A stretch of 62,936 nt of DNA, the filler included, from Octopus bimaculoides (lineage: Eukaryota): assembly GCF_001194135.2 (NCBI RefSeq). It is 8 parts of 8 records of this genome, joined end to end, with 100 filler letters (N's around TTAATTAATTAA, not from the genome) between each part and the next. Parts side by side here need not be neighbours in the genome. Positions count along the whole stretch, not along the records: positions 1 to 14,351 come from NC_068983.1; 7 more parts are not named here. The stretch is one strand, 5' to 3'. The notes beneath the pieces are model-generated. The model was not told the DNA's origin and searched no databases. It saw nothing but the letters and a program-made list of their open reading frames with translations. Shown here piece after piece: positions 1-14,639 of the stretch (positions are counted from its first letter, which is position 1; each line of letters begins with the position of its first letter). The position numbers were made by a program, and so were the translations under genes.

Positions 1-327
1 AATACAAAGACCTGGAAATAGAGATAACTCGAATGTGGAATCTAAAAACAGAAACAATTCCTATCATAGTAGGTGCCTTAGGTATAATAAAAAAATATTC
101 AGACAAATACATAACAAAAACACCAGGACTTACAAATATATATAACATACAGAAAATTGCACTACTGGGTACTGCACACATTCTACGCAAAACACTTTCA
201 ATACAGTAAACATAAGAGCACCACAGCAAACCACAGCACATACCCAAGGCGCACAGAGCTGCGCTCGGTAGTGAAGTGAAAGCACGTTATAAAAATAAAA
301 CTACTGAACAATAATAATAATAATAAT
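1..327 (+). mobile_element. R4/Dong-like non-LTR retrotransposon, 3' end (restriction-like endonuclease C-terminus, 3'UTR, (AAT)6 tail)
   Basis: Frame 3-209 reads YKDLEIEITRMWNLKTETIPIIVGALGIIKKYSDKYITKTPGLTNIYNIQKIALLGTAHILRKTLSIQ*, the typical RLE C-terminus. The element ends in (AAT)6 at 310-327. Confidence 0.85.
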
Positions 328-602
328 GGCGATGATAACTTCTGCTTTAATTTGTCTGAAATTACTGCTTTTGTTTTGATGATTTAGTCTGTTTTCCTAA
401 CTTTAGGCTGCTACCTCTTTTCCTTAATCCTTAATTTAATAAGATCTTATTTGTGTTGTTCCATTATACAAAATCAATAGATTGTTTTCAATATCTTCTA
501 CAAACCATTTTGTCTTCGTATATGTGTGTGTGTTCATGCATGTGTGTACATAAATTAATGTTATTATGTTTATTACATATGCCACATGATATCCAGTGTA
601 TG

Positions 603-640
<38 letters not shown>

Positions 641-1219
641 ATACATTGCTATGTATGCCACATTTTCACATCTTTACAGGATGCATCATAATTGTTATTT
701 TCAGTGTACCATTTTTCAACAAAGAGCACAACACGCATTAATATAAATTATTCATTATTTGAAGTTACAATATAAGATCTACGCAATGATAAAGATAAGT
801 TTAAAAAAGTCAACATGTGATATTTAATATCAAGAAAATGCATATAGCAAGTCTACAGAACGTTCTGTTTTGAGGTGTGTGCAAAAGATAGAATTTCTGT
901 GCCCAGCAGTGTGAGGCTATATACAGGATTAGATGTATATATCTGGTCAAAGCAGGAAAATGAATTGAAAAAAAGACATTTTATATCCAACTCATTGAAA
1001 GTACACTTCTAAGAAAAGCTTCCTCAAAGTGATTGGCATGGAACCTTCTTAGGAGCTCATGTACATAGTAACAAAACACATACTAACTCTGCTGGATGAG
1101 ATTAGTTATAGTGAAGACTTTTTCAGCAAAGTGCTTAATAAATAAATGTCATGTAAATTGGGAATTATTTGGATTCACACACATACACACACTCTCTCTC
1201 TTTCTCTGCTGCTTTCACA

Positions 1220-1560
1220 GAGGTGAACAAGTTTTCTTGAGAACTGCATATTGTCAGGAATCCCAATCTTTTCTGTGAAGTTCAAGATCCGGAAATTAGC
1301 CTTCAGCATTTCATCCTATGTCTTGTGTCTCCCTCTTCTGCAAACACCTTCCACATCTTTACACAGTTCTCCTCATCCATTAAGTATCACATGTCCACAA
1401 CATCAGTCTTCTTTCTTCCACACCACATTTGATTCTTTTATGCCTTGTTTTTCTCTCAGCACATTTATACTTTGTCATTCATGCACATTTACATTGAATG
1501 TCTAGTGAAACATGCTCACTTTATTTATTTCCAGTCTCAAATCCTCTATGTCTCATTACC
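1220..1560 (-). mobile_element. Degraded RTE-clade LINE 3' fragment
   Basis: Minus-strand translation gives IKCGVEERRL...GHVI..DEENCVK...WDEMLKA.FRILNFTEK...QYAVLKKT with stops and frameshifts, resembling the RTE ORF C-terminus. Confidence 0.55.
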
Positions 1561-1908
1561 ATCTAGCATTGCTGTTCTATGTCACACAATCTGTAAATTT
1601 CAGTAAATTTTCTCTGTTTTTGTGCAGCTGAAAATTGCTCTGCATTTTACATTTAATGTAATTCGCATTGCTTAAATAAATGGAATCGCATGAAATGATC
1701 GTACTGCAGTAACCTTCAATATCCTTGTTGCTTATTTTGAAGGGACATTGTACAGTGATCAGTGCTCGTGACAGAGGGGTTTTGTCATTTTGTCATTTTG
1801 GATGTTTGAAGAATAAGAAGAATGATGAGTTTAGAGAGTGGATCAAGGGGAGCAACAGGTAGCAAGGGGGACAACTGGCTCCTTAGTAGATTTTTTTTAA
1901 AAAACTAG

Positions 1909-3045
1909 TCAAAGTTGTATATTGAGGTGTGGTCTGTACTTTTGTATGAACAGGTTTTCCTTGTTTAGGCGTTCTTGTACTGAGATCGAATCTTTGCATT
2001 AGTATAACGGGAAGATAGGTGTTTTTTGGATTGCGCATCTATCAATGTGGTCACTCAGTGCTTTCTGCCTGTATTGAGGGAAACGAATCTTCTTTATGCG
2101 GCGTGACTTTGCGTCTCAAAGTAAGGCTCGTTTGGCCCACATAATTGTGACCACAACCTGAGCAGGTTAGAACATAGATAAGGTTCTGGGAAGCACATGT
2201 GAAGTTGGTCTAAATTGAGAATTTTTGTCCTTGCTGGAATGTGAATTCCGAGCCTTCAGTTAAGTATGGGCATGTACCACAATTAGGTCACCTGCATTTT
2301 TTAACTGTTGATATCGTTTGTATTGAGTATAGTTTTGCATTTGTTAGGAGTCTCTTGAGTGATTTGTCTTGTCTTTTGCATTTTAGTAGTTTGTGTGTAC
2401 TTAGGATGCTGATCATTTTCGGGTCTTGCGTGAGCAGAGGGAGATTTTGTATAATTGTGCTGTATGCTTCATTGTTTCTGGGGTTGTGGGTTGATATGTA
2501 TGGGAGTGATTTAGGGTAAGGTGTGGCGCTATGTTTTGTGTCCAATTTCTTAGCATGTTTAATTCCATGTTCTATAAGTGTAGGTGGGTATTGACGTTCA
2601 GTGAGTGTTATTTTGAGTTCTTGTAGGTGAAGTTCCCAAGTGGTTGTGTCAGATACAATTGTACAGATCCTTTTTGCTAGATTGAATGGGATATTTATTT
2701 TGGTGTGTTTAAGATGGCATGAACTGAAAAGGAGTTACTGTTTTGAGTCTGTTGGTTTGTAGTAAATGTCGGTTGCAATTTGGTTGTTGGACTTTTTTAA
2801 AATCAAAATGTCCAGAAATTGGAGCTGTTCCTTGCTATATTCCATTGTAAATTGGATGTTGGAGTTAATATTGTTCAATGTGGACTTGAAATCCAGGAGT
2901 TTATCATAGGTTTCATTCCAGATGATAAAACAATTGTCTAGGTACCTTTTCCAGTTTTCTCTTATATACTGGTGGAATAGGGTTCCAAATTTTTGGAGCG
3001 AAAGTTCTATATATGTATATATATTCATAGAGATATGGTTTTATA
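1909..3045 (-). mobile_element. Penelope-like element, 5'-truncated: RT (YLDD-type motif), thumb, GIY-YIG endonuclease; pseudogenised
   Basis: RYLDNCFIIW...NIQFTME...LQFLDI...TDIYYKPTDSKQ*LLFSSCHLKHTKINIPFNLAKRICTIVSD, then LPYISTHNP, KKCR*PNCGTCP and NLIYVLTCSGCGHNYVGQT. Several stops and a frameshift. Confidence 0.9.
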
Positions 3046-3059
3046 GGTTTATCACTCAT

Positions 3060-3420
3060 ATATATTTTACACATATTTTTTTCTGTATTCTACCTTCCAC
3101 CCTGCATTTTTCCTGTGAATATATAGACATGTACATGGAACCTTTTCTGTGCACTTGTGGATGTGTGCATGTATGCGGGTACATGCGTATATAGACGTGT
3201 GTGTGCATGCATTCGAGAATGTGCATATGTAGACGTGTTTTATCCTTATTGCTTTTTTACACTTTTTTCTGCATTTTGCCTTTAGCCCTGCTTTTTCTTG
3301 TGCATGTGCATATATAGACGTGTGTATGAACCTTTTTTGCAAGCGCATGTATGTGTGCGAGCGTGTATGCGGGTATGTATATATTTTTAGGCGAAGGTGT
3401 GGGAGTGCATGTGTGTGTTT
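3060..3420. repeat. Diverged ~190-bp tandem duplication at the truncation point of the PLE
   Basis: Two similar units share TTTTACAC..TTTTTCTG.ATT, ATATAGAC.TGT, GAACCTTTT and GTATGCGGGTA. Confidence 0.5.
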
Positions 3421-3434
3421 CCAGTGAGGGTGGA

Positions 3435-3468
<34 letters not shown>

Positions 3469-4423
3469 CGCATGTACCTGGTTGTGCAGGCACGCACGTG
3501 TATGTATGGACTGGTGCACTTACGCGAATACTATGGACATTTTTACTCTCTTACCTTTACTCCCTCCCCTCACTTAGCGGTCGTTCTAATTACTCTTTTG
3601 TCTTAATAACGGTCAACCACACAGTAATTTCCCTTTGTTTAACGGTCATTTTCATAGCATTTTTTCGATGGCCAAATAACTGAAGAGATGGCAGCGTGGG
3701 TTTTCGCCCCGACATCCGGAACTCAGTGTTTTATCATGACAGCCGAATAATTGTCACATATTATTTACAAATAAATTCCTTTATTTACATAATATTGAGG
3801 TCTCTTTCTTTCTTTTGTTGTCTTGCCTTTTCTATCAATATATATATATATATATATANNNNNNNNNNNNNNNNNNNNNNNNNNNNNNNNNNNNNNNNNN
3901 NNNNNNNNNNNNNNNNNNNNNNNNNNNNNNNNNNNNNNNNNNNNNNNNNNNNNNNNNNNNNNNNNNNNNNNNNNNNNNNNNNNNNNNNNNNNNNNNNNNN
4001 NNNNNNNNNNNNNNNNNNNNNNNNNNNNNNNNNNNNNNNNNNNNNNNNNNNNNNNNNNNNNNNNNNNNNNNNNNNNNNNNNNNNNNNNNNNNNNNNNNNN
4101 NNNNNNNNNNNNNNNNNNNNNNNNNNNNNNNNNNNNNNNNNNNNNNNNNNNNNNNNNNNNNNNNNNNNNNNNNNNNNNNNNNNNNNNNNNNNNNNNNNNN
4201 NNNNNNNNNNNNNNNNNNNNNNNNNNNNNNNNNNNNNNNNNNNNNNNNNNNNNNNNNNNNNNNNNNNNNNNNNNNNNNNNNNNNNNNNNNNNNNNNNNNN
4301 NNNNNNNNNNNNNNNNNNNNNNNNNNNNNNNNNNNNNNNNNNNNNNNNNNNNNNNGTAAATAAAATGAGATAACAAAACCAAGGCATTGGGAAATTTCTA
4401 GGACATTTATAAAGAGAAAGGTA

Positions 4424-4470
4424 GTCTTACAACTGTTTCAGCGATATGAGGCTATCCCGTCATCAGAGAC
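4424..4470 (-). ncRNA. Minimal type-I hammerhead ribozyme-like motif (PLE 3' repeat)
   Basis: Minus strand: GTCT CTGATGA C GGGATA gcctca TATCGC T GAAAC agtt GTA AGAC. Helix I is GTCT/AGAC, the cleavage triplet is GUA, and helix II has one mismatch. Confidence 0.6.
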
Positions 4471-4730
4471 GATATGGAGAGAGTTAAATAGAGGGAGATA
4501 GTAGACTAATATAAGAAGTTTTTTGGGGAAGGGAAGTATAAAAATAAATAAGAGAATAAAAACGTATGCTAAATGTTACAGTTGCAGTTCTATTATCCAA
4601 GGAAAGTGCTCTGTAGAATGGGTAGAATTGTCCTTCCATAGTACCTACTGTCTTTCTGTAATACTTACAGAGCCTTACCTCCAATTTGGGCTTTCTGGAT
4701 ACCAAAACTTTTCATATATATATATAAATA

Positions 4731-4785
<55 letters not shown>

Positions 4786-5124
4786 GCACACACACAACTG
4801 CATTATGACTTCTGTTTGTATTTTCGTATGTGCTCATAATTGTGCAGTTTCACAGATTTTGACCCCCAAACTTGGTCCATAGGGTTGTAAATCCATGGAA
4901 TTGTGAATTTATAAGTTTGTGTATATTTTTCTAGGAATCATGTGATGTCATGAATGTGTACAAAGCACAATATATCTGTGTAATGAGAGAACTCAGTATA
5001 AGCTTACGAGAGTGTGTGTCTTTCATACATAATGTTAATAAAATGCATATAATCAGTGTCCAGAGAAGAACTTACTCAGGTTGGTGGGATGGCAAAGTGG
5101 GGGCAGAATTCATGCTTGAAATTT

Positions 5125-5385
5125 CTAAGTATGAATTATTGCTTGGGCATGCTAGGCAAAAAGGTTTCCTCCCTAATGTTTAAAACGTTCATTTTTGATG
5201 TTATGTGATTTAGTTATGCAGTGATGTAGAGCTTGCATTTGCTGCCATGTCCCCTGTATTTACTAGCCTTAGCTATAATGCTCCAGTTTATATGGAGGTT
5301 GCTCATGCCTCTCTCTTTAAGTGTTCATACCATATTGGATGAAGATGCTGTTTTTATCTTGGAACAATCTGCATATATATATGTG
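5125..5385 (-). mobile_element. Penelope-like GIY-YIG endonuclease C-terminal remnant (second PLE lineage)
   Basis: SNMV*TLKERGMSNLHINWSIIAKASKYRGHGSKCKL...NVLNIREETF. Same motif pattern as the remnant at 26430-27130. Confidence 0.6.
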
Positions 5386-6144
5386 TGTGTGTGTAAATTT
5401 ATAGATCCTCCTTTATGTATTTTGTATGAATGCATGTATGTTGCATACTCATAAATTGAAATACATAAAAGTAGTGAGTGTATGAATAAATATATATATA
5501 GAGAGAAAGTCTTTTATTTATAAAATCTGATGGTTGTGTATATATTGCTAAACAGAAACATGAACATAAATCAATAGTCTCACACACACACACACACCTA
5601 CAAATTCAAGACTATTGTCAGATAATGAAAAACTGCTTGATATTTTCAAAACTCATGTTTGGACTTACTTTTCGATGTACATGCATGCATTGCCCCCATA
5701 CACACACACATATATACACATACAAACACACTAGCATATACACACAGATGCGCCTACTCACTGATATGCCTACACACACAATTACACTTGTACAATCATG
5801 CAGAGATGCACCTACACTCTCACCAGCTGTACATATGCATGCATACATTTTGCAGAAGATATTCTAAACTTTAACTAAAGAATAACGTCACCTTGTTAAA
5901 GACCAGATCTTACTTTGTTTCAAAAGGAACACTTAAATAAGATATAGTGAGATAACAAGATGAATGAAAATTTATTGGTCTGCAGCCTGAAGCAAAGTAT
6001 ATACAGTCTTGAATTCTTGTTCTTTTTGTTGTTGAAGAAGACGATAATGATTATTGTTATTGCTGTTGTTGTTGTTGTTGTTGCTGTACAAGTAGATCCA
6101 TCACATTAATGTATCTCCTTTCGTTTTCTTTTTAACATCTTCAG

Positions 6145-6153
6145 CTACCATTT
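6145..6153 (+). CDS. PKC: Candidate 9-nt microexon (Leu-Pro-Phe) in the PKC intron
   Basis: ...ctcctttcgttttctttttaacatcttcag|CTACCATTT|gtaagt: long polypyrimidine tract, CAG acceptor, consensus donor, frame-preserving length. Confidence 0.5.
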
Positions 6154-6210
6154 GTAAGTGAGCTACTTATCATTATTATCATTACTACTACTACAGTTAT
6201 TACTATTATT

Positions 6211-6254
<44 letters not shown>

Positions 6255-6720
6255 TATTATTATTTTAGTGTGATGATATGTGCAAACAATTGGCTCTTCA
6301 TTCAGCTCCCACATTATTTTATTAGACCTAAGAACTTATTATCATTGTTGTTCTGTGCTTGGTCATGAAATATTTTCTCCTCTTCCGAATATTAACCCCC
6401 CTTCCTCCTTTAGTTACTCCAATTCTGAACACTAAACAACAATATATGCACTTTATCTACACTTTTTCCTCCCTTTTATTTTCATTAAAATTAATTACCT
6501 TATATGTATTTATTTCTTTGCAAGAAAATGTCTTATAAGCACCAGAAAATTACATTTGGTTGACTTTTTTTCTTATATATTTCTTTAATTATTATTATGA
6601 TTATTATCTTTATTATTGTTCTCATTATTGTTTTTTTGTGTGTGTGTTTCCTTATAGCAATACTATGGATTCTTTTGCATTTGTGCAGCCAATGAGTTTG
6701 TCTCTTTTTTACTTACTATG

Positions 6721-6759
<39 letters not shown>

Positions 6760-8869
6760 TATTCAGTTCTATAATATTTGTCAACTTCATATGATTGCTC
6801 TTTCCTAGGTCATCTCTTGTTTCATTCACTTGTGGCTTCTCCTTTCGTGCTACTGCACCTCTACATGTAATTTCTGTTTCCAAATGTCTGTTGAAACTTT
6901 CAAATAGCTGTAACTTTTATTCTACCAAAACAAACAGTTTTCACCAGCCCATCAGTGGTCACTTTTGAATATTACTCATATTTGAAGGTCAAATTTAATT
7001 TGAAATAATTAATTGATTTTAATTATTATTATAATTATCATTATTATTATTATTAATTATCCCTTTCATTTTGCTGCTCAATAACTTGGTGATAATTCAA
7101 ATGATAAACTTTTTCCAGTAATGTTTAACTCTTCAGATTACAATCTCCAAATACTTGTATAAATATATTAAAATTATCGCTTTTTTAAAAAATTTCTTTT
7201 GCTATTTTATATAATGTGCAAATTTAAATATTAATTTAAATATTAATTGATTTTTTTTCTAAATTTGTTTGGATTTCATTGATGGATGTGAAATACTTCT
7301 TGTAACAAATTATCTTACTACTGTAATTGCTTTCTTGAAATATTGACCTCTAAAAGGGAACACACATTCTGCTCAATAAACTGTATTCAACTAATCACGT
7401 AGCTATGTGATTGCTTATATCCTCTAACTAAAATCTGGGTATTGGATCTCTTCTTACAAAATCTTTTTCCCAAAGACCCAATCCTCTATGTTGATCTTAT
7501 ATATCATATTTTATTGTCAGAGTGATTGGTTCTCATAATATTTTTTTATTTTATTTCACTGGCTTCCCCTAACAGAAATTCAGATATTATTTCAGGTTTA
7601 ATATTTAAGGAATTAAATTGCTTTTTCTGATGCCTTATTCATTTCATTATTTTTTTTTATTGCATTTTGGCAAATAATTCTACACTGCTCTGTTGTACTG
7701 AATTTCATAAATCTTTTAAAACTTTAAAAAAATTTTCTGAGTTTAGAAATTTTCACAGAAACACAATTCTCTTTTTGAAAGTATATATCAGTTTACTGCT
7801 CTAGGCTCATGAGCATGGTTCATAATTGTTACAACAATATGCTCCTTCTACCTCACTCTTACATGCTGTTTTTTATAAATCAAGGAGCCACTCAATAAGT
7901 TGTTTGTTTCTTGTTGATTTGCCAAAAAAATATAATTGTTTAATATTTTTTTTCGTTGTCCTGCTATCCATTTCAAAATTAGCTTGGTAGATTGGCTGGT
8001 TTTTGCCAACTTAATTTTTTTTCTATCAAAACAAAATTCTTTTTACAATAAATGCATTTGCTAATAATTTATCTGTGAAATAGTAGTGGGGAAACTGATG
8101 TCAGTCAAACAAACACAGATTAGCAAAATAATGTGCTTTGCTTGAAAACAAAGCACATTGGTTGTAACAAAGTTTAAACTCAAGATTTAGCAGTTATTAA
8201 TAATTCAATACTTCACTGCAGCTGTGTTTCATATAAGTTTATGAATATGAACAGTTTAATATGATCTGCTAACTATAATATTCTCTTTTTAAAAACATCA
8301 GTTGTTAATGGGTTTCCTGTATCCTTGTTAAGGAAATGTCCCATCTACACTATTCAGTACATTAATAACCTCAAATTTATGTCATCATTTAGATGGGCTT
8401 GTCTTTTTAATGATGCCAGCAATTGAAATATTTGTTTACTCTCTCTTTAACATAACATACATAGGTGAACTTTTTCCAGGCATTATTCACTGAAATATGC
8501 TAATTTTATATGCCAGTACCTTTATAATATTTACCATCTATTTAGTGACTTTCTTATCATTAGTTCAGCAAGTACAGTGGTGTCTGTTCCTTGCTGAGAA
8601 AATCTAATAAAACTGAAACATATCCAGAATTGACTTGCTGGGATAATTAAAACAACCTTAGTCATTGACTAATATTGTTTTTTTTTTTTTATACCCTATT
8701 TCTGACTAGCTTTTTAATGTTTACTTCATTAAACATGGTAACATTAACTTGGCTATTGTGGGTTTTTGGGCTTCTTTTTTTTAATGTGGAGGGCTCTCCT
8801 GAGTAATTTCTCTCAGTAGTTTTTTTTTCTCTACAAACAGAAAATATGTTAAAAGCAATGCCTTTCATT

Positions 8870-9215
8870 GATGCCCGTGCTAAAATTTAAGGTCAATAAC
8901 AGCTTGCAAGACTCTCACCTACAAAGCCAAGTAGTCTGGAAACAGGCAAGTGCAAGGATCTCTGGCTTTGCAATGAGGTGGGTGTTATTTCAGAATGTCC
9001 TTCTCCTAGAAAGATGTCTAAACAAAGACTAGGGATATCTCATTCCTAGCTGTTTGATGGCTGTTGACTCTGTTGAGATCATCCCTCCTGTCCAACAAAA
9101 ACCATCTTCCTTACCAAGCAGACTCAGTAGGGTTACCAGTTTATTTACTGATGGCCTGATCATGCCACAGGTTGTATTGGGTTACATGTTACCAGTAGCA
9201 CTGAAAGTGACCCAA
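8870..9215 (-). mobile_element. Probable RTE-clade LINE 5' region fragment
   Basis: Minus strand contains CTAGGAGAAGGACATTCTGAAAT, resembling RTE 5'UTR motifs as recalled. No ORF support. Confidence 0.3.
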
Positions 9216-9218
9216 CAT

Positions 9219-9268
<50 letters not shown>

Positions 9269-10170
9269 CATATANNNNNNNNNNNNNNNNNNNNNNNNNN
9301 NNNNNNNNNNNNNNNNNNNNNNNNNNNNNNNNNNNNNNNNNNNNNNNNNNNNNNNNNNNNNNNNNNNNNNNNNNNNNNNNNNNNNNNNNNNNNNNNNNNN
9401 NNNNNNNNNNNNNNNNNNNNNNNNNNNNNNNNNNNNNNNNNNNNNNNNNNNNNNNNNNNNNNNNNNNNNNNNNNNNNNNNNNNNNNNNNNNNNNNNNNNN
9501 NNNNNNNNNNNNNNNNNNNNNNNNNNNNNNNACACACACTGAGACATCTGTTTTTTAAGTCTCCAGAAAATTATGTTCTAATTCTTGCATTAAAAAAAAA
9601 CATTTTTTTTTTACATGATTCTGCTGGTCTCCTCTCAGAAATGTTATCCTTCACCTTGTCATTCTGGCAGGAGACATGAAATTAACACAATTGTATGTCT
9701 TAATTATAGTCCACAATCAATAAAAAAAAAGACTTAATTTATTAAGGTTCATTTTAACTAGATGAGAAATGTTTGCTTCATTTTTGATCTCTAACAACTA
9801 CAACACTCGAGAAAATAAAAACCAATTCCTAGGTTTCCTTTCTTGTAAGCTGATTGCTTATTTATTGTTTCTTGTAGCCCTTGAGCCAAGCACACTTCTC
9901 GGTAAAAATCTTCAGCCATTTTCAAATGTTAACACATCATCAATATTAATGGCTACTTAAGACCACCATATTTGACCTTTGCTAAAATATCTTTAACTTC
10001 TGGATATTACCATTTATTAATCATTCAATTCTTAAGTTTCCTAGATTTGCTGGTTGGTCTGTTTGTTATTTGTTATAAATGCTTATAACTACCATTATAA
10101 CATATCTGCTAGGTCATTACACTTGTGAATGATAAATTCTTTTTTTTTTTCTTATCCATCTTTTCTACAG

Positions 10171-10278
10171 CCTCCATTTGATGGAGAAGATGAAGAAGAA
10201 CTGTTCACCTCCATCACAGACCACAATGTTTCTTACCCCAAGTCTATGTCTCGAGAAGCTGTGTCAATTTGTAAAGGA
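10171..10278 (+). CDS. PKC: Conventional protein kinase C, kinase-domain exon
   Basis: ttttctacag|[36 protein letters not shown]|gtaagc, 108 nt, phase 0/0. Near-identical to PKC-alpha/beta [36 protein letters not shown]. Confidence 0.96.
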
Positions 10279-11118
10279 GTAAGCATTTTGAACAGTATAA
10301 TTTTTTTTACTCAACATATGTCTTTATTCATCATTATCATCATCTTCCCCATCAGCATTGTCCAACCTATGCTTTTCCTTATTGTCATCATCACCATCAT
10401 TATTGTCATCAATAAAAATCAGTAACATCATAAGCATTGTCATAATCACCTGGGGCAGTCTCTAAGTGGCTGCTAGACCTGCTAGAAATATCATTGAAAT
10501 TTCCCTCAAATAACATCCTACTATCTTAAAAAAGTAAAGGATAGCTTCATTTATGTCATCCAACATACCTTCTAAAAACACAGGCTGGTTGCAGCTAGAA
10601 TATCTTCTATCATAAGTTTGCTCAATCAGGGTTGACTGAGGCTAAACAGTAATGCCATCACACCACCACCATCATCATCATCATCATCATCATTGCAATT
10701 GCTACCATAACTATCAATATCATCATCAGTCAGCATCATTAAGGCTTTGTCAACCTTGATTTTCCTTAAGCTTTCATTATTCTACAAAATGCTAATGTAC
10801 CATTATCATCATCATTGTCATTATCATCGTCACCACCGTCATCGTCATCATCATCATCAACTTGTGTTTAAAGCCTGCTCAGATTAACTTTGCCTTTCAC
10901 TCTCCCAAGACATGATAAAACAAGTAATGAGGGATGAGTTGATGTAATCAATGCCTCTTTATGACTTCAATCCACTGATTGAAACAAATAATAGAGTAAA
11001 AGAATACAAACTTCTAAATTCATTTCCATTTTTTAAAATAAATAAATGGCCGAAGTACAAATAAATTTCCCAGTTTTACCAAATATATTTATTATTTCCT
11101 TGTCACTTCATTTTCAAG

Positions 11119-11259
11119 TTACTTACCAAAAACCCCTCCAAGCGTCTTGGCTGCACTAACAACGGTGAACGAGATATCAAAGATCATGCTTTCTTCAGAC
11201 GCATCGATTGGGCAAAGGTGGAAAGTCGAGATGTACAGCCACCATATAAACCGAAAATA
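11119..11259 (+). CDS. PKC: Conventional protein kinase C exon (end of kinase domain, start of AGC C-tail)
   Basis: ttttcaag|[47 protein letters not shown]|gtgagt, 141 nt, phase 0/0. Confidence 0.96.
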
Positions 11260-11640
11260 GTGAGTATATATATCTACACATACATCCATACATTCACCTC
11301 TGACTTCACCTTTTATTAATGGTTCTTGCTTGCTTTCTTCCCTTCTTTATCTGCTGTTTCTTTGAATTTCTGATCATCACATATTCTTGGTTATGCAAGT
11401 TACTGGGTGGCATCAAACATGACCTGACATAAAACGTTATCTTTTATAGTTATCCATTCAATGATGAAATAGGAAACGGTTACATAATGTTTTGCCATGA
11501 AGGCAACTCCTTCTGTTGATATTGCCATCATGTTGTAATTGTTTCAACCACTATCTCCTTTCACAGAGACCAGAGAAATCTACTTACTTATAGGTTAATA
11601 CCTAATTAAGAAATCTTCATTTGTTATAATTAATGAGTAG

Positions 11641-11817
11641 AATGTTTTTAACAGATTCTGTGTGATGATTCACGTTTCGCCGCCCCCTAACTTGGAGATA
11701 ATTCACCACCTGCCTGACTTACCCTATATAGACTACATGGCGATGAAGTTTTCTCTGCAGCCCCAACAATCCACTGGCTTATGCAACTCACCAACATTGT
11801 TTGTTTTTCTCACTTAG
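11641..11817 (+). CDS. Candidate divergent PKC terminal (V5-like) exon
   Basis: After an AG (weak acceptor), phase 0 reads NVFNRFCVMIHVSPPPNLEIIHHLPDLPYIDYMAMKFSLQPQQSTGLCNSPTLFVFLT*. Partly alignable to PKC-betaII NFDRFFTRHPPVLTPPDQEVIRNI. Locally GC/CpG-enriched and followed by UTR-like AT-rich sequence. Confidence 0.35.
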   Translation, partial: NVFNRFCVMIHVSPPPNLEIIHHLPDLPYIDYMAMKFSLQPQQSTGLCNSPTLFVFLT

Positions 11818-13051
11818 ATTGGTTTTTTTTTAATGTATTTTTAATTGTTTGTTGGTAGATATACCAAAACTTGTTATTATGATATGAAAATATGTTTTAT
11901 TAATGTACATTTATGAAAGTTACAACTGTGTTAAATCTAAGTGTAAATGCATTAATAGATGTGTGTGTGCATGCATATGTGTGTGTGTATATATATATAT
12001 TATGTTTGTGTGTGTTTATATACAAAGAAACCTGTATGTTGGCATGTCTAGATATCAAATGTTACATTTGATACCATTTTTTTTGTTAACTCTCAACTCC
12101 ATCTTCTGCTCAAATTACCTAAATGCATTGAATTTGTTCAGTCAAAGCTACCAAGGCTTTCCTTTATGAAATTGCTGTTTGTCAAACATTCTCCAACTGT
12201 TATACCCATACACACTCACATAACACACAGATTTGTGTTTTGTGTTATATATATATGTGTTATAATATACCATGTGTGTATTGTATATAATTCAGTTGAT
12301 TGAATAAATTTGATTCACAAAACTGTACAGTTTGTACAATCTTGTATATAAACTACACAAATTATATTTATAGTTTTGTATATAAAGTTGATAAAGATGA
12401 ATAGATTTTGTATTTTTGATGGCTCTAAATAGTCATTCAATGTACTTCTTCCATCTTTTTACAAGAGTCTCCGCTGTAAGCATCACAATTCAATTCACAC
12501 AGCTTGTTCACTTTTGTGAACTTTAACTTGATATGCATATAACACTCACTCTCACATACACACCACACACACACACACACACACACATACACACACCACA
12601 CACACACACAATACACGCATGCGCACATACACATGCATGCACAGATTGTGTTGTTCCCCAGTATATTTAAATGTATAACTTCACATATTTACAAAACTCT
12701 ATTGTTACTTTATTGAGCACTTTGGCAATTCTTTTATACATTAAAAATATGCAGTATTTTATATANNNNNNNNNNNNNNNNNNNNNNNNNNNNNNNNNNN
12801 NNNNNNNNNNNNNNNNNNNNNNNNNNNNNNNNNNNNNNTTTGTATTTTTTTCATAGCTCCCATGGTTACTGAGATAATCTACTATAATAATACTCTTGTG
12901 TTTATGAATGAGAAAGGAAGGGGTGATAGATGAATAAGGAAGGAAGGAGTGATGTCATACTTGGTAGTGGGATGATGAAAATTGTACGCTGAAAAAAATA
13001 AATCAAACAGCGTTTCAACTCTGTTTGAATATATGTGTGTATGTAAAAGGA

Positions 13052-13087
<36 letters not shown>

Positions 13088-13316
13088 ATGAGCATGCAAT
13101 GGAAGTGGGATGGTTCATATTTGTTCGCTTAGTATTTGGGCTTATTTTTTGATTTGGTTGAATCTTGGTTGGTTTTTTTTAGCATTTTGACAGAAAAAAA
13201 TCATTCTAAAATTGTTTTTTAATGTAAGCATGCCCAAACAAGTCAAATCCTTACACAGAGCATGTTTTACGACCACATCATCCAAACTGACCGGGTGAAA
13301 CTGGGCTTAGCTGCTA

Positions 13317-13357
<41 letters not shown>

Positions 13358-14229
13358 TATATGTATATATCCTATTTATTCTAGTTACATTTTGTTCTGT
13401 AATACATACAATACTGCGTATATAGAGATAAGCATACCACAAGTTGTATAAACACATGGAAAGCAACTTTATGGAGCATTTTTGATGCTAAGGTAAGAAG
13501 AAAAAAATATGTGAGTGAGCAATTACACTTAAAATTACAGCAAAACAGGTTTGGGTCTTATTTCTCAAAGTAGGAAACTCCTGCTCTACGGGCTGTCCTT
13601 TCCTTCTAAACTTACATCTGTGTGGAACAACTCTCTCACTCTTTTCATGTTTATTCTTCAAGCATTAGCTTTCACAAATTCACCCTGGATATTCAACCAC
13701 ATCAATCTCACCGATGTAAGGAAATCATTTAGCGGTCACTAAATGATATGTAGATTGGGGATGACAACATGGATGTGGCACACTGTTCATAGATCACATA
13801 TTTAGATTTATTTTAGAAAATTTCATTCTATTTCCGGACAGATCACATTAGATTCAATTATTCTTAACTGACAGGAATATCATCTACTGCAAGATTCACC
13901 TTTAGTTAACTGACAGTGTTCTATCATTGACACAAGTATTAAACAGTGTTCTTTAAAAGAGATTCCTCAGTGTATTGGAGATATTGACATTTAAACTATT
14001 ATGTAGATGATTTTTTAATTCCTTTTATTGGTTTCAGTTATTAAACTACAATTGAGCTAAGGCACCCACATTTATTGATTCTAATGAATATATCAATCCC
14101 AATACTTATGGGGTTGTTTTATATGTATTTTAGCAATCTCCTTTAATTATCAAATGGATAAAAAAGAAAAAATCTATTGGTATAAAAGGTTGCAGCTATC
14201 TCCTAATTGAGTGATAATTATGTGTGTGT

Positions 14230-14289
<60 letters not shown>

Positions 14290-14639
14290 GTATATATATA
14301 TGTATATATATATATATGTATATATATATGTATATATATATATATGTATATNNNNNNNNNNNNNNNNNNNNNNNNNNNNNNNNNNNNNNNNNNNNTTAAT
14401 TAATTAANNNNNNNNNNNNNNNNNNNNNNNNNNNNNNNNNNNNNNNNNNNNTAAGAAGATCTCCGCAGGAGAAGGGGAGATAATCTCAACAGTCAACATT
14501 TCTCCAAAAGTACATGCCCTGTAAAGGAGAAAGTTAATTTCATTGCCTACCAATAAAAGGAATTTCGTAAGCATCTTATGATACAGACACACATATATAA
14601 GGTGAGCTAGCTTAACCCTTGGCAGTCGGGTAAGAGACT

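Follow-up and report, generated by a model that had tools for sequence, protein, structure and literature searches.

Does a nine-nucleotide stretch within an intron of the octopus classical protein kinase C (cPKC) gene constitute a genuine exon, and what might the three residues it encodes do to the kinase? We addressed these questions in a window of 62,936 nucleotides of Octopus bimaculoides DNA (the whole stretch analysed, eight parts joined with filler), whose first piece, positions 1 to 14,351, comes from NC_068983.1. In this piece, positions 6142-6159 read CAG, CTACCATTT and GTAAGT without interruption, and a pyrimidine tract precedes them. The original prediction had described the polypyrimidine tract with its CAG, the 9-mer and the GTAAGT donor, and our direct reading of 6122-6159 agrees with that description to the base. 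We conclude that 6145-6153 is probably a genuine cassette microexon of 9 nt, of which the octopus cPKC gene makes alternative use, a reading to which we assign a probability of about 0.7. The features on which the argument draws are listed below.

1-6144, + strand: upstream part of the cPKC intron, following the exon that ends ...YEMLAGQ, which lies outside the piece.
6060-6087, + strand: (TGT/GTT)n microsatellite, ~60-85 nt upstream of the microexon acceptor, from direct reading.
6106-6110, + strand: candidate branch point TTAAT (yUnAy) from a motif scan, its A ~35 nt upstream of the AG.
6122-6144, + strand: 3' splice site of the putative microexon, a pyrimidine tract plus CAG acceptor, cgttttctttttaacatcttcag.
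6132-6136, + strand: second branch-point candidate, TTAAC, from the motif scan; probably too near the AG.
6145-6153, + strand: probable cassette microexon of 9 nt, CTA CCA TTT = Leu-Pro-Phe (LPF), phase 0-0.
6154-6159, + strand: 5' splice site GTAAGT of the putative microexon, a perfect intronic consensus, followed by gag.
6154-10170, + strand: downstream intron segment of 4,017 nt, from the microexon to the next exon; includes the assembly gap at 9275-9531.
6167-6264, + strand: (TTA)n microsatellite (Tandem Repeats Finder: period 3, 32.7 copies), starting 14 nt past the donor.
10171-10278, + strand: constitutive cPKC exon A, 108 nt, phase 0-0, encoding the αF-αG loop and helix αG onward.
11119-11259, + strand: constitutive cPKC exon B, 141 nt, phase 0-0, matching octopus cPKC proteins.

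The immediate surroundings of the 9-mer are those expected of a microexon. Its length is a multiple of 3 and it is open in the frame of the host; canonical 3' and 5' splice sites flank it directly, in the sense orientation, and it lies inside an intron of the host gene. The pyrimidine tract, cgttttctttttaacatctt, occupies 6122-6141 and the CAG acceptor 6142-6144, and over positions -23 to -4 this acceptor is 80% pyrimidine, compared to 85% for the two constitutive exons. Within the window, the two microsatellites listed above are the sole repeats in the flanks of the microexon. No PKC coding segment was found in any frame upstream of 6145, reading from position 1 of the piece. The host intron exceeds 10 kb in the piece, and the O. 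sinensis cPKC gene spans 385.5 kb, indicating that its introns are very long; the corresponding genes of Argonauta and Sepia pharaonis cover 269 kb and 119 kb. Assembly gaps of 497, 257 and 73 N occur at 3859-4355, 9275-9531 and 12766-12838, respectively; TA-rich or TA/TG microsatellite sequence borders each of the three, and the contigs measure 1.5-5 kb, a pattern suggestive of scaffolds assembled from short reads. Two open reading frames resemble transposon remnants, one at 33-209 on the + strand (...IPIIVGALGIIKK...IQKIALLGTAHILRK...) and one at 2735-3028 on the - strand (...FLDILILKK...DIYYKPTDSKQ), and neither has a Pfam match or an entry in the protein collection. No match was obtained when the window and its longer ORFs were scanned for Rfam families, tRNAs and Pfam domains.

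The two constitutive exons identify the host. Exon A begins CCTCCATTTG behind ...ttttctacag, and gtaagc follows its end at 10278. Exons A and B each match, at 100% identity, the proteins annotated as 'calcium-dependent protein kinase C' in O. sinensis, O. bimaculoides, O. vulgaris and Argonauta hians, and these matching proteins carry the domains C1, C2, Pkinase and Pkinase_C. Judged from these sequence matches, the host of the microexon is a classical (Ca2+-dependent) protein kinase C gene. Between exons A and B, the intron contains (CAT/CAC)n microsatellites at 10650-10860, which yield poly-His ORFs in one frame and represent ordinary low-complexity sequence.

Annotated isoforms of O. sinensis bear directly on the use of the 9-mer. 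Full-length isoforms were retrieved with a five-fold tandem of the octopus peptide, in a search that lists proteins no longer than 1.75 times the query. The cPKC isoform X1 (XP_029634364.1; P0374, 661 aa) carries the insert as EMLAGQ-LPF-PPFDG, and isoform X3 (XP_029634366.1; P0375, 658 aa) carries the same insert at the same junction; isoforms X2 (XP_029634365.1) and X4 (XP_029634367.1), corresponding to P0368 and P0369, are skipping forms devoid of LPF. In these annotated isoforms LPF combines with either of the alternative C-terminal (V5) endings. The frame-preserving 9-nt PKC microexon that had been proposed, giving GQ-LPF-PPFDGED, is therefore found residue for residue in XP_029634364.1 and XP_029634366.1, and the assignment to PKC and to phase 0, which had been assumed, is confirmed by the O. 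sinensis isoforms and by the genomic junction of an outgroup described below. It had also been claimed that read-through of the donor would give a truncated form: the translation does run as claimed, LPFVSELLIIIIITTTTVITIII...LV and a stop codon, but no truncated form was present among the isoforms retrieved.

These isoforms are RefSeq model proteins, computer-predicted, from one species, and as such they point indirectly to the presence of both inclusion and skipping products in mRNA. Among the 314 junction-containing proteins retrieved, only two bear LPF, both from O. sinensis. Since the insert is absent from the homologues, protein homology cannot have generated the O. sinensis models. NCBI Gnomon calls for transcript or RNA-seq support before an alternative variant is modelled; given this rule and the lack of the insert in homologues, the LPF models must rest on transcript evidence.

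We likewise asked how widely the LPF form is distributed. It was absent among the retrieved models of O. bimaculoides (XP_052822467.1 and XP_052822468.1, and the older XP_014777445 and XP_014777446), O. vulgaris (CAI9720544.1), Argonauta hians (GAB1600386.1) and Sepia pharaonis (CAE1171680.1). The decapod transcript contig P0490 (Logan) contains the skipping junction, without LPF, and was the sole cephalopod transcript fragment in the protein collection to span this junction. That LPF is missing from these other cephalopod models suggests that its inclusion may be low or species-limited. On three genomic contigs from other cephalopods (L001-L003), no xPF microexon was found in the 0.7-1.7 kb upstream of exon A, a range to be read against the 4 kb that separate the octopus microexon from this exon.

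A more distant comparison was provided by two near-identical outgroup contigs, L004 (8424-15280) and L005 (325-6868; both ENA ERZ25069853), which hold a compact cPKC gene with exon boundaries as in octopus. The contigs come from an animal of lophotrochozoan grade, and the identity of its cPKC is 77-79% whether the comparison is with molluscs or with annelids. At the relevant junction the upstream exon ends ...GCTGGACAG before gtaagt (...GGACAG, then gtaagt), and exon A starts after cag with CCTCCGTTTGAT (cag, then CCTCCG). The same phase-0 junction in the outgroup indicates that the phase-0 intron is old, while the 801-nt orthologous intron of L004/L005 contains no xPF microexon, indicating that the microexon is lineage-restricted. 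Its distribution appears to be limited to octopods. A single other insert at the same junction was seen among the 314 proteins, in the Owenia fusiformis model P0476 (EMLAGQ-PPFRVNRDVLFF-PPFDG); it is 12 residues long, unrelated to LPF, and also starts with the first residues of the next exon. This insert may stem from an error of annotation or represent a duplicate of the next exon that has decayed.

The position of the insert in the kinase domain was defined by two alignments, with residues numbered as in the LPF isoform, where LPF is 523-525. Across 69 cPKCs, from molluscs to mammals, the residues preceding the insert are invariant at D507, W508, W509, A510, G512, V513, L514, L515, E517, M518, L519, A520, G521 and Q522, as are those following it at P526, P527, F528, D529, G530, E531, D532 and E533. 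Alignment to the catalytic domains of PKCα (3IW4, 4RA4, 8U37) and PKCβII (2I0E, 3PFQ) places a three-residue gap exactly between Q and PPF, and none of the solved cPKC structures aligned has extra residues there. Both alignments bear out the earlier placement of LPF in the αF-αG loop. For the whole LPF isoform, AlphaFold2 gave a model of low confidence (mean pLDDT 48, pTM 0.32), and we used its secondary structure alone, in which a helix at 509-520 (αF) and a helix at 533-541 (αG) are predicted to enclose a coil at 521-532 that holds LPF. We take the insert to fall between the equivalents of PKA Tyr235 and Pro236. In PKA, Tyr235-Phe239 of the αF-αG segment form the hydrophobic docking pocket for PKI and the R subunits.

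Might the splice-flanked 9-mer be a coincidence, the LPF of the O. sinensis isoforms being encoded elsewhere in the intron or by an alternative donor or acceptor? Four 9-mers in the window's portion of the intron encode LPF by chance, which lends this idea some substance; yet only the one at 6145-6153 has AG and GT at its flanks. Moreover, nine nucleotides added to the upstream exon would open with GTN (Val) and nine added ahead of exon A would close with NAG, so that the GT-AG rule bars LPF from an extension of either neighbouring exon, rules out alternative donor or acceptor use as its source, and leaves a separate 9-nt exon. We also screened the piece for a YAG with at least 75% pyrimidines ahead of it and with GTRAGT after a further 3-30 nt. 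The 6145-6153 site was the sole match on both strands of the 14.35-kb piece, and simulations of this intron yielded 0.013 (Markov order-1) and 0.047 (order-3) expected frame-open candidates. The joint chance that such a pseudo-microexon (0.01-0.05 per intron) would in addition encode exactly LPF is well below 1e-4, and we regard a coincidence as highly improbable. Comparably improbable, in our estimation, is that the sequence is a recursive-splicing exon, serving as a stepping stone for the two-step removal of a very long intron and normally spliced out itself. An intron that exceeds 10 kb here, within a gene of 385 kb, is a plausible setting for such a device, as is the juxtaposition of strong 3' and 5' splice sites. 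However, the exon would have to begin GTRAGT to regenerate a 5' splice site; it begins CTACCA, which excludes a recursive-splicing exon of the classic kind, and it is retained in annotated mRNAs.

Splicing noise is a serious rival, if on balance an unlikely one. Here the 9-mer would be a cryptic pseudo-exon with good splice sites and low inclusion, annotated once, and the kinase it yields would be neutral or slightly defective. LPF is annotated in one of the five cephalopod gene sets retrieved, a similar insert is found in none of the 314 homologues or the solved structures, and the insert breaks a run of residues invariant in 69 cPKCs and could simply damage the kinase. The UGC enhancer motif is absent nearby, and microsatellites lie on both sides of the 9-mer, as they would in an ordinary intron. 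These points are countered by an exon that keeps the frame, contains no stop and is followed by a perfect donor hexamer, by inserted residues that resemble the following PPF, as a tolerated insertion would, and by annotated inclusion with both C-terminal variants. In addition, the O. bimaculoides window represents a second species in which the exon and both of its splice sites are intact. We consequently favor a genuine, alternatively used microexon.

How inclusion of this microexon might be controlled was considered next to the sequence of its flanks. The 60 nt ahead of the acceptor are free of TGC/UGC, the nearest TGC being at -63 from the exon start, and the UGC enhancer within ~40 nt upstream of the acceptor that marks Srrm4/eMIC targets is accordingly missing. 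A UGCAUG motif (Rbfox-type) occurs once in the 400 nt to either side of the microexon, in ATGCATGCATA at 5836-5846, 309 nt upstream. With no UGC close by and UGCAUG at this distance, the flanks give no positive sign of Srrm4-type or Rbfox-type control. The strong flanking splice sites may let the spliceosome define the tiny exon, and the flanking (TGT)n and (TTA)n tracts could provide sites for splicing regulators that bind GU-rich or AU-rich elements.

The microexon resembles the start of exon A, as had been observed in the original prediction: 8 of 10 exonic bases match between the CTACCATTT site and CCTCCATTTG, or 14 of 17 positions if the comparison is anchored at the acceptor. On both strands, 13 10-mers with at most 2 mismatches from CCTCCATTTG were found against 11.3 expected, or ~4e-4 per position. 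A resemblance at this one site is unlikely to be due to chance, with the proviso that it was spotted post hoc. A wider, 129-nt local alignment of the microexon region with the exon A region was not significant, 25% of control windows scoring as high, and the similarity ends at the donor. On these sequence comparisons, an origin of the microexon by duplication of the 5' end of exon A is possible. We also noted that P0345, a 65-aa ORF from the representative search, contains part of exon A in two tandem copies, with Y or H at one residue, indicating that partial duplications of exon A occur somewhere.

We suggest that inclusion of the microexon would lengthen the αF-αG loop by three residues, immediately ahead of PPF, which is invariant, and of the acidic patch DGEDEEE. 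Since LPF mimics PPF, the result would be a tandem xPF-PPF. The hydrophobic anchor can then be retained by one of the two copies, and the acidic patch would be displaced, along with αG, relative to αF. The likely outcome would be altered C-lobe docking of substrates, pseudosubstrate or partners, or altered maturation or stability, as opposed to altered catalytic chemistry. The fullest version of this proposal, which we offer tentatively and consider doubtful as a whole, is that the octopod-specific microexon arose when the 5' end of exon A was partly duplicated, is regulated by tissue, and re-tunes the αF-αG docking surface (for substrate, pseudosubstrate or partner binding) in particular neurons. 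If true, a duplicate-derived microexon would turn the invariant GQ-PPF of octopod cPKC into GQ-LPF-PPF; among the PKC sequences and structures searched, we found no other optional insertion between GQ and PPF.

In molluscs, classical PKC is among the kinases central to synaptic plasticity, and the microexon is a candidate means by which the octopus lineage tunes signalling in its nervous system. An optional three-residue insertion at an invariant stretch would, moreover, offer a naturally occurring test of the surface that AGC kinases present for docking between αF and αG. No new class of mechanism is implied: cassette microexons are an already known class of feature, and this one sits, uncharacterised, in one automated annotation, that of O. 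sinensis. A search of the literature for microexons in octopus or other cephalopods, and for splice variants of PKC at this position, returned no relevant paper. Gene models of O. bimaculoides, O. vulgaris and Argonauta seem to lack the exon, a gap in annotation to which we draw attention. The junctions by which transcripts can be recognised are ...GGNCAR-CTACCATTT-CCTCCATTTGATGG for inclusion (k-mer CTACCATTTCCTCCATTTGATGGAGAAG) and ...GGNCAR joined to CCTCCATTTGATGG for skipping.

Animal cassette microexons (3-27 nt) include those of a neural programme reportedly directed by Srrm4/nSR100 (eMIC-domain) proteins (Irimia et al. 2014; Torres-Méndez et al. 2019). Like them, the octopus exon, at 9 nt, is a multiple of three, has no stop and is bounded by strong splice sites; it likewise adds a few residues to a surface loop beside an interaction surface of a signalling protein, and it has both inclusion and skipping forms, as represented by model isoforms. 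It differs from Srrm4-type neural microexons in that the final 60 nt of the intron ahead of it lack UGC, and from many deeply conserved neural microexons in that it seems to be restricted to octopods.

For LPF itself, no counterpart was found among the homologous sequences and solved PKC structures searched. By alignment of DWWA.GVL.YEM.AG-[Y/Q]-PPF, the octopus insert lies inside the segment equivalent to the αF-αG docking surface of PKA. In contrast to PKA, no experiment is known to tie the αF-αG loop of cPKCs to a specific partner, and the effect that LPF would have is deduced from its position. In the atypical PKCs (PKCι/ζ) this loop is longer, PKCι chains spanning 129 residues here compared to 122 for the LPF form and 119 for cPKCs, indicating that the fold tolerates extra length at this site. 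The additional residues of the atypical enzymes presumably follow the xPF motif and are constitutive, whereas those of octopus precede PPF and are optional.

Finally, the octopus gene resembles vertebrate PKCβ (βI/βII) in the alternative splicing of a classical PKC to two V5 endings. The octopus endings are KSKKDVSNFDREFT...PEFVISV, which is βI-like, and HDSRKAENFDKMFT...QIQSDS. Following ...PPYKPKI, the proteins continue with HDSRKAENFDKMFTSKDVKMTPTDSLIIMNIDDSAFRNFSFVNPFFSQIQSDS or KSKKDVSNFDREFTSEAPKLTPTDKLFIMNLDQTEFAGFSYINPEFVISV (P0368/P0371 versus P0369/P0372/P0375), from exons that both lie outside the window, and we take the ending KSKKDVSNFDREFTSEAPKLTPTDKLFIMNLDQTEFAGFSYINPEFVISV to be a close likeness of vertebrate PKCβI. 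These sequences suggest that the βI/βII-type choice of V5 is old. The two events nevertheless act on different parts of the enzyme: the V5 choice of vertebrate PKCβ swaps a tail of ~50 residues that controls localisation and stability, whereas LPF in octopus is a three-residue insertion in the catalytic core.
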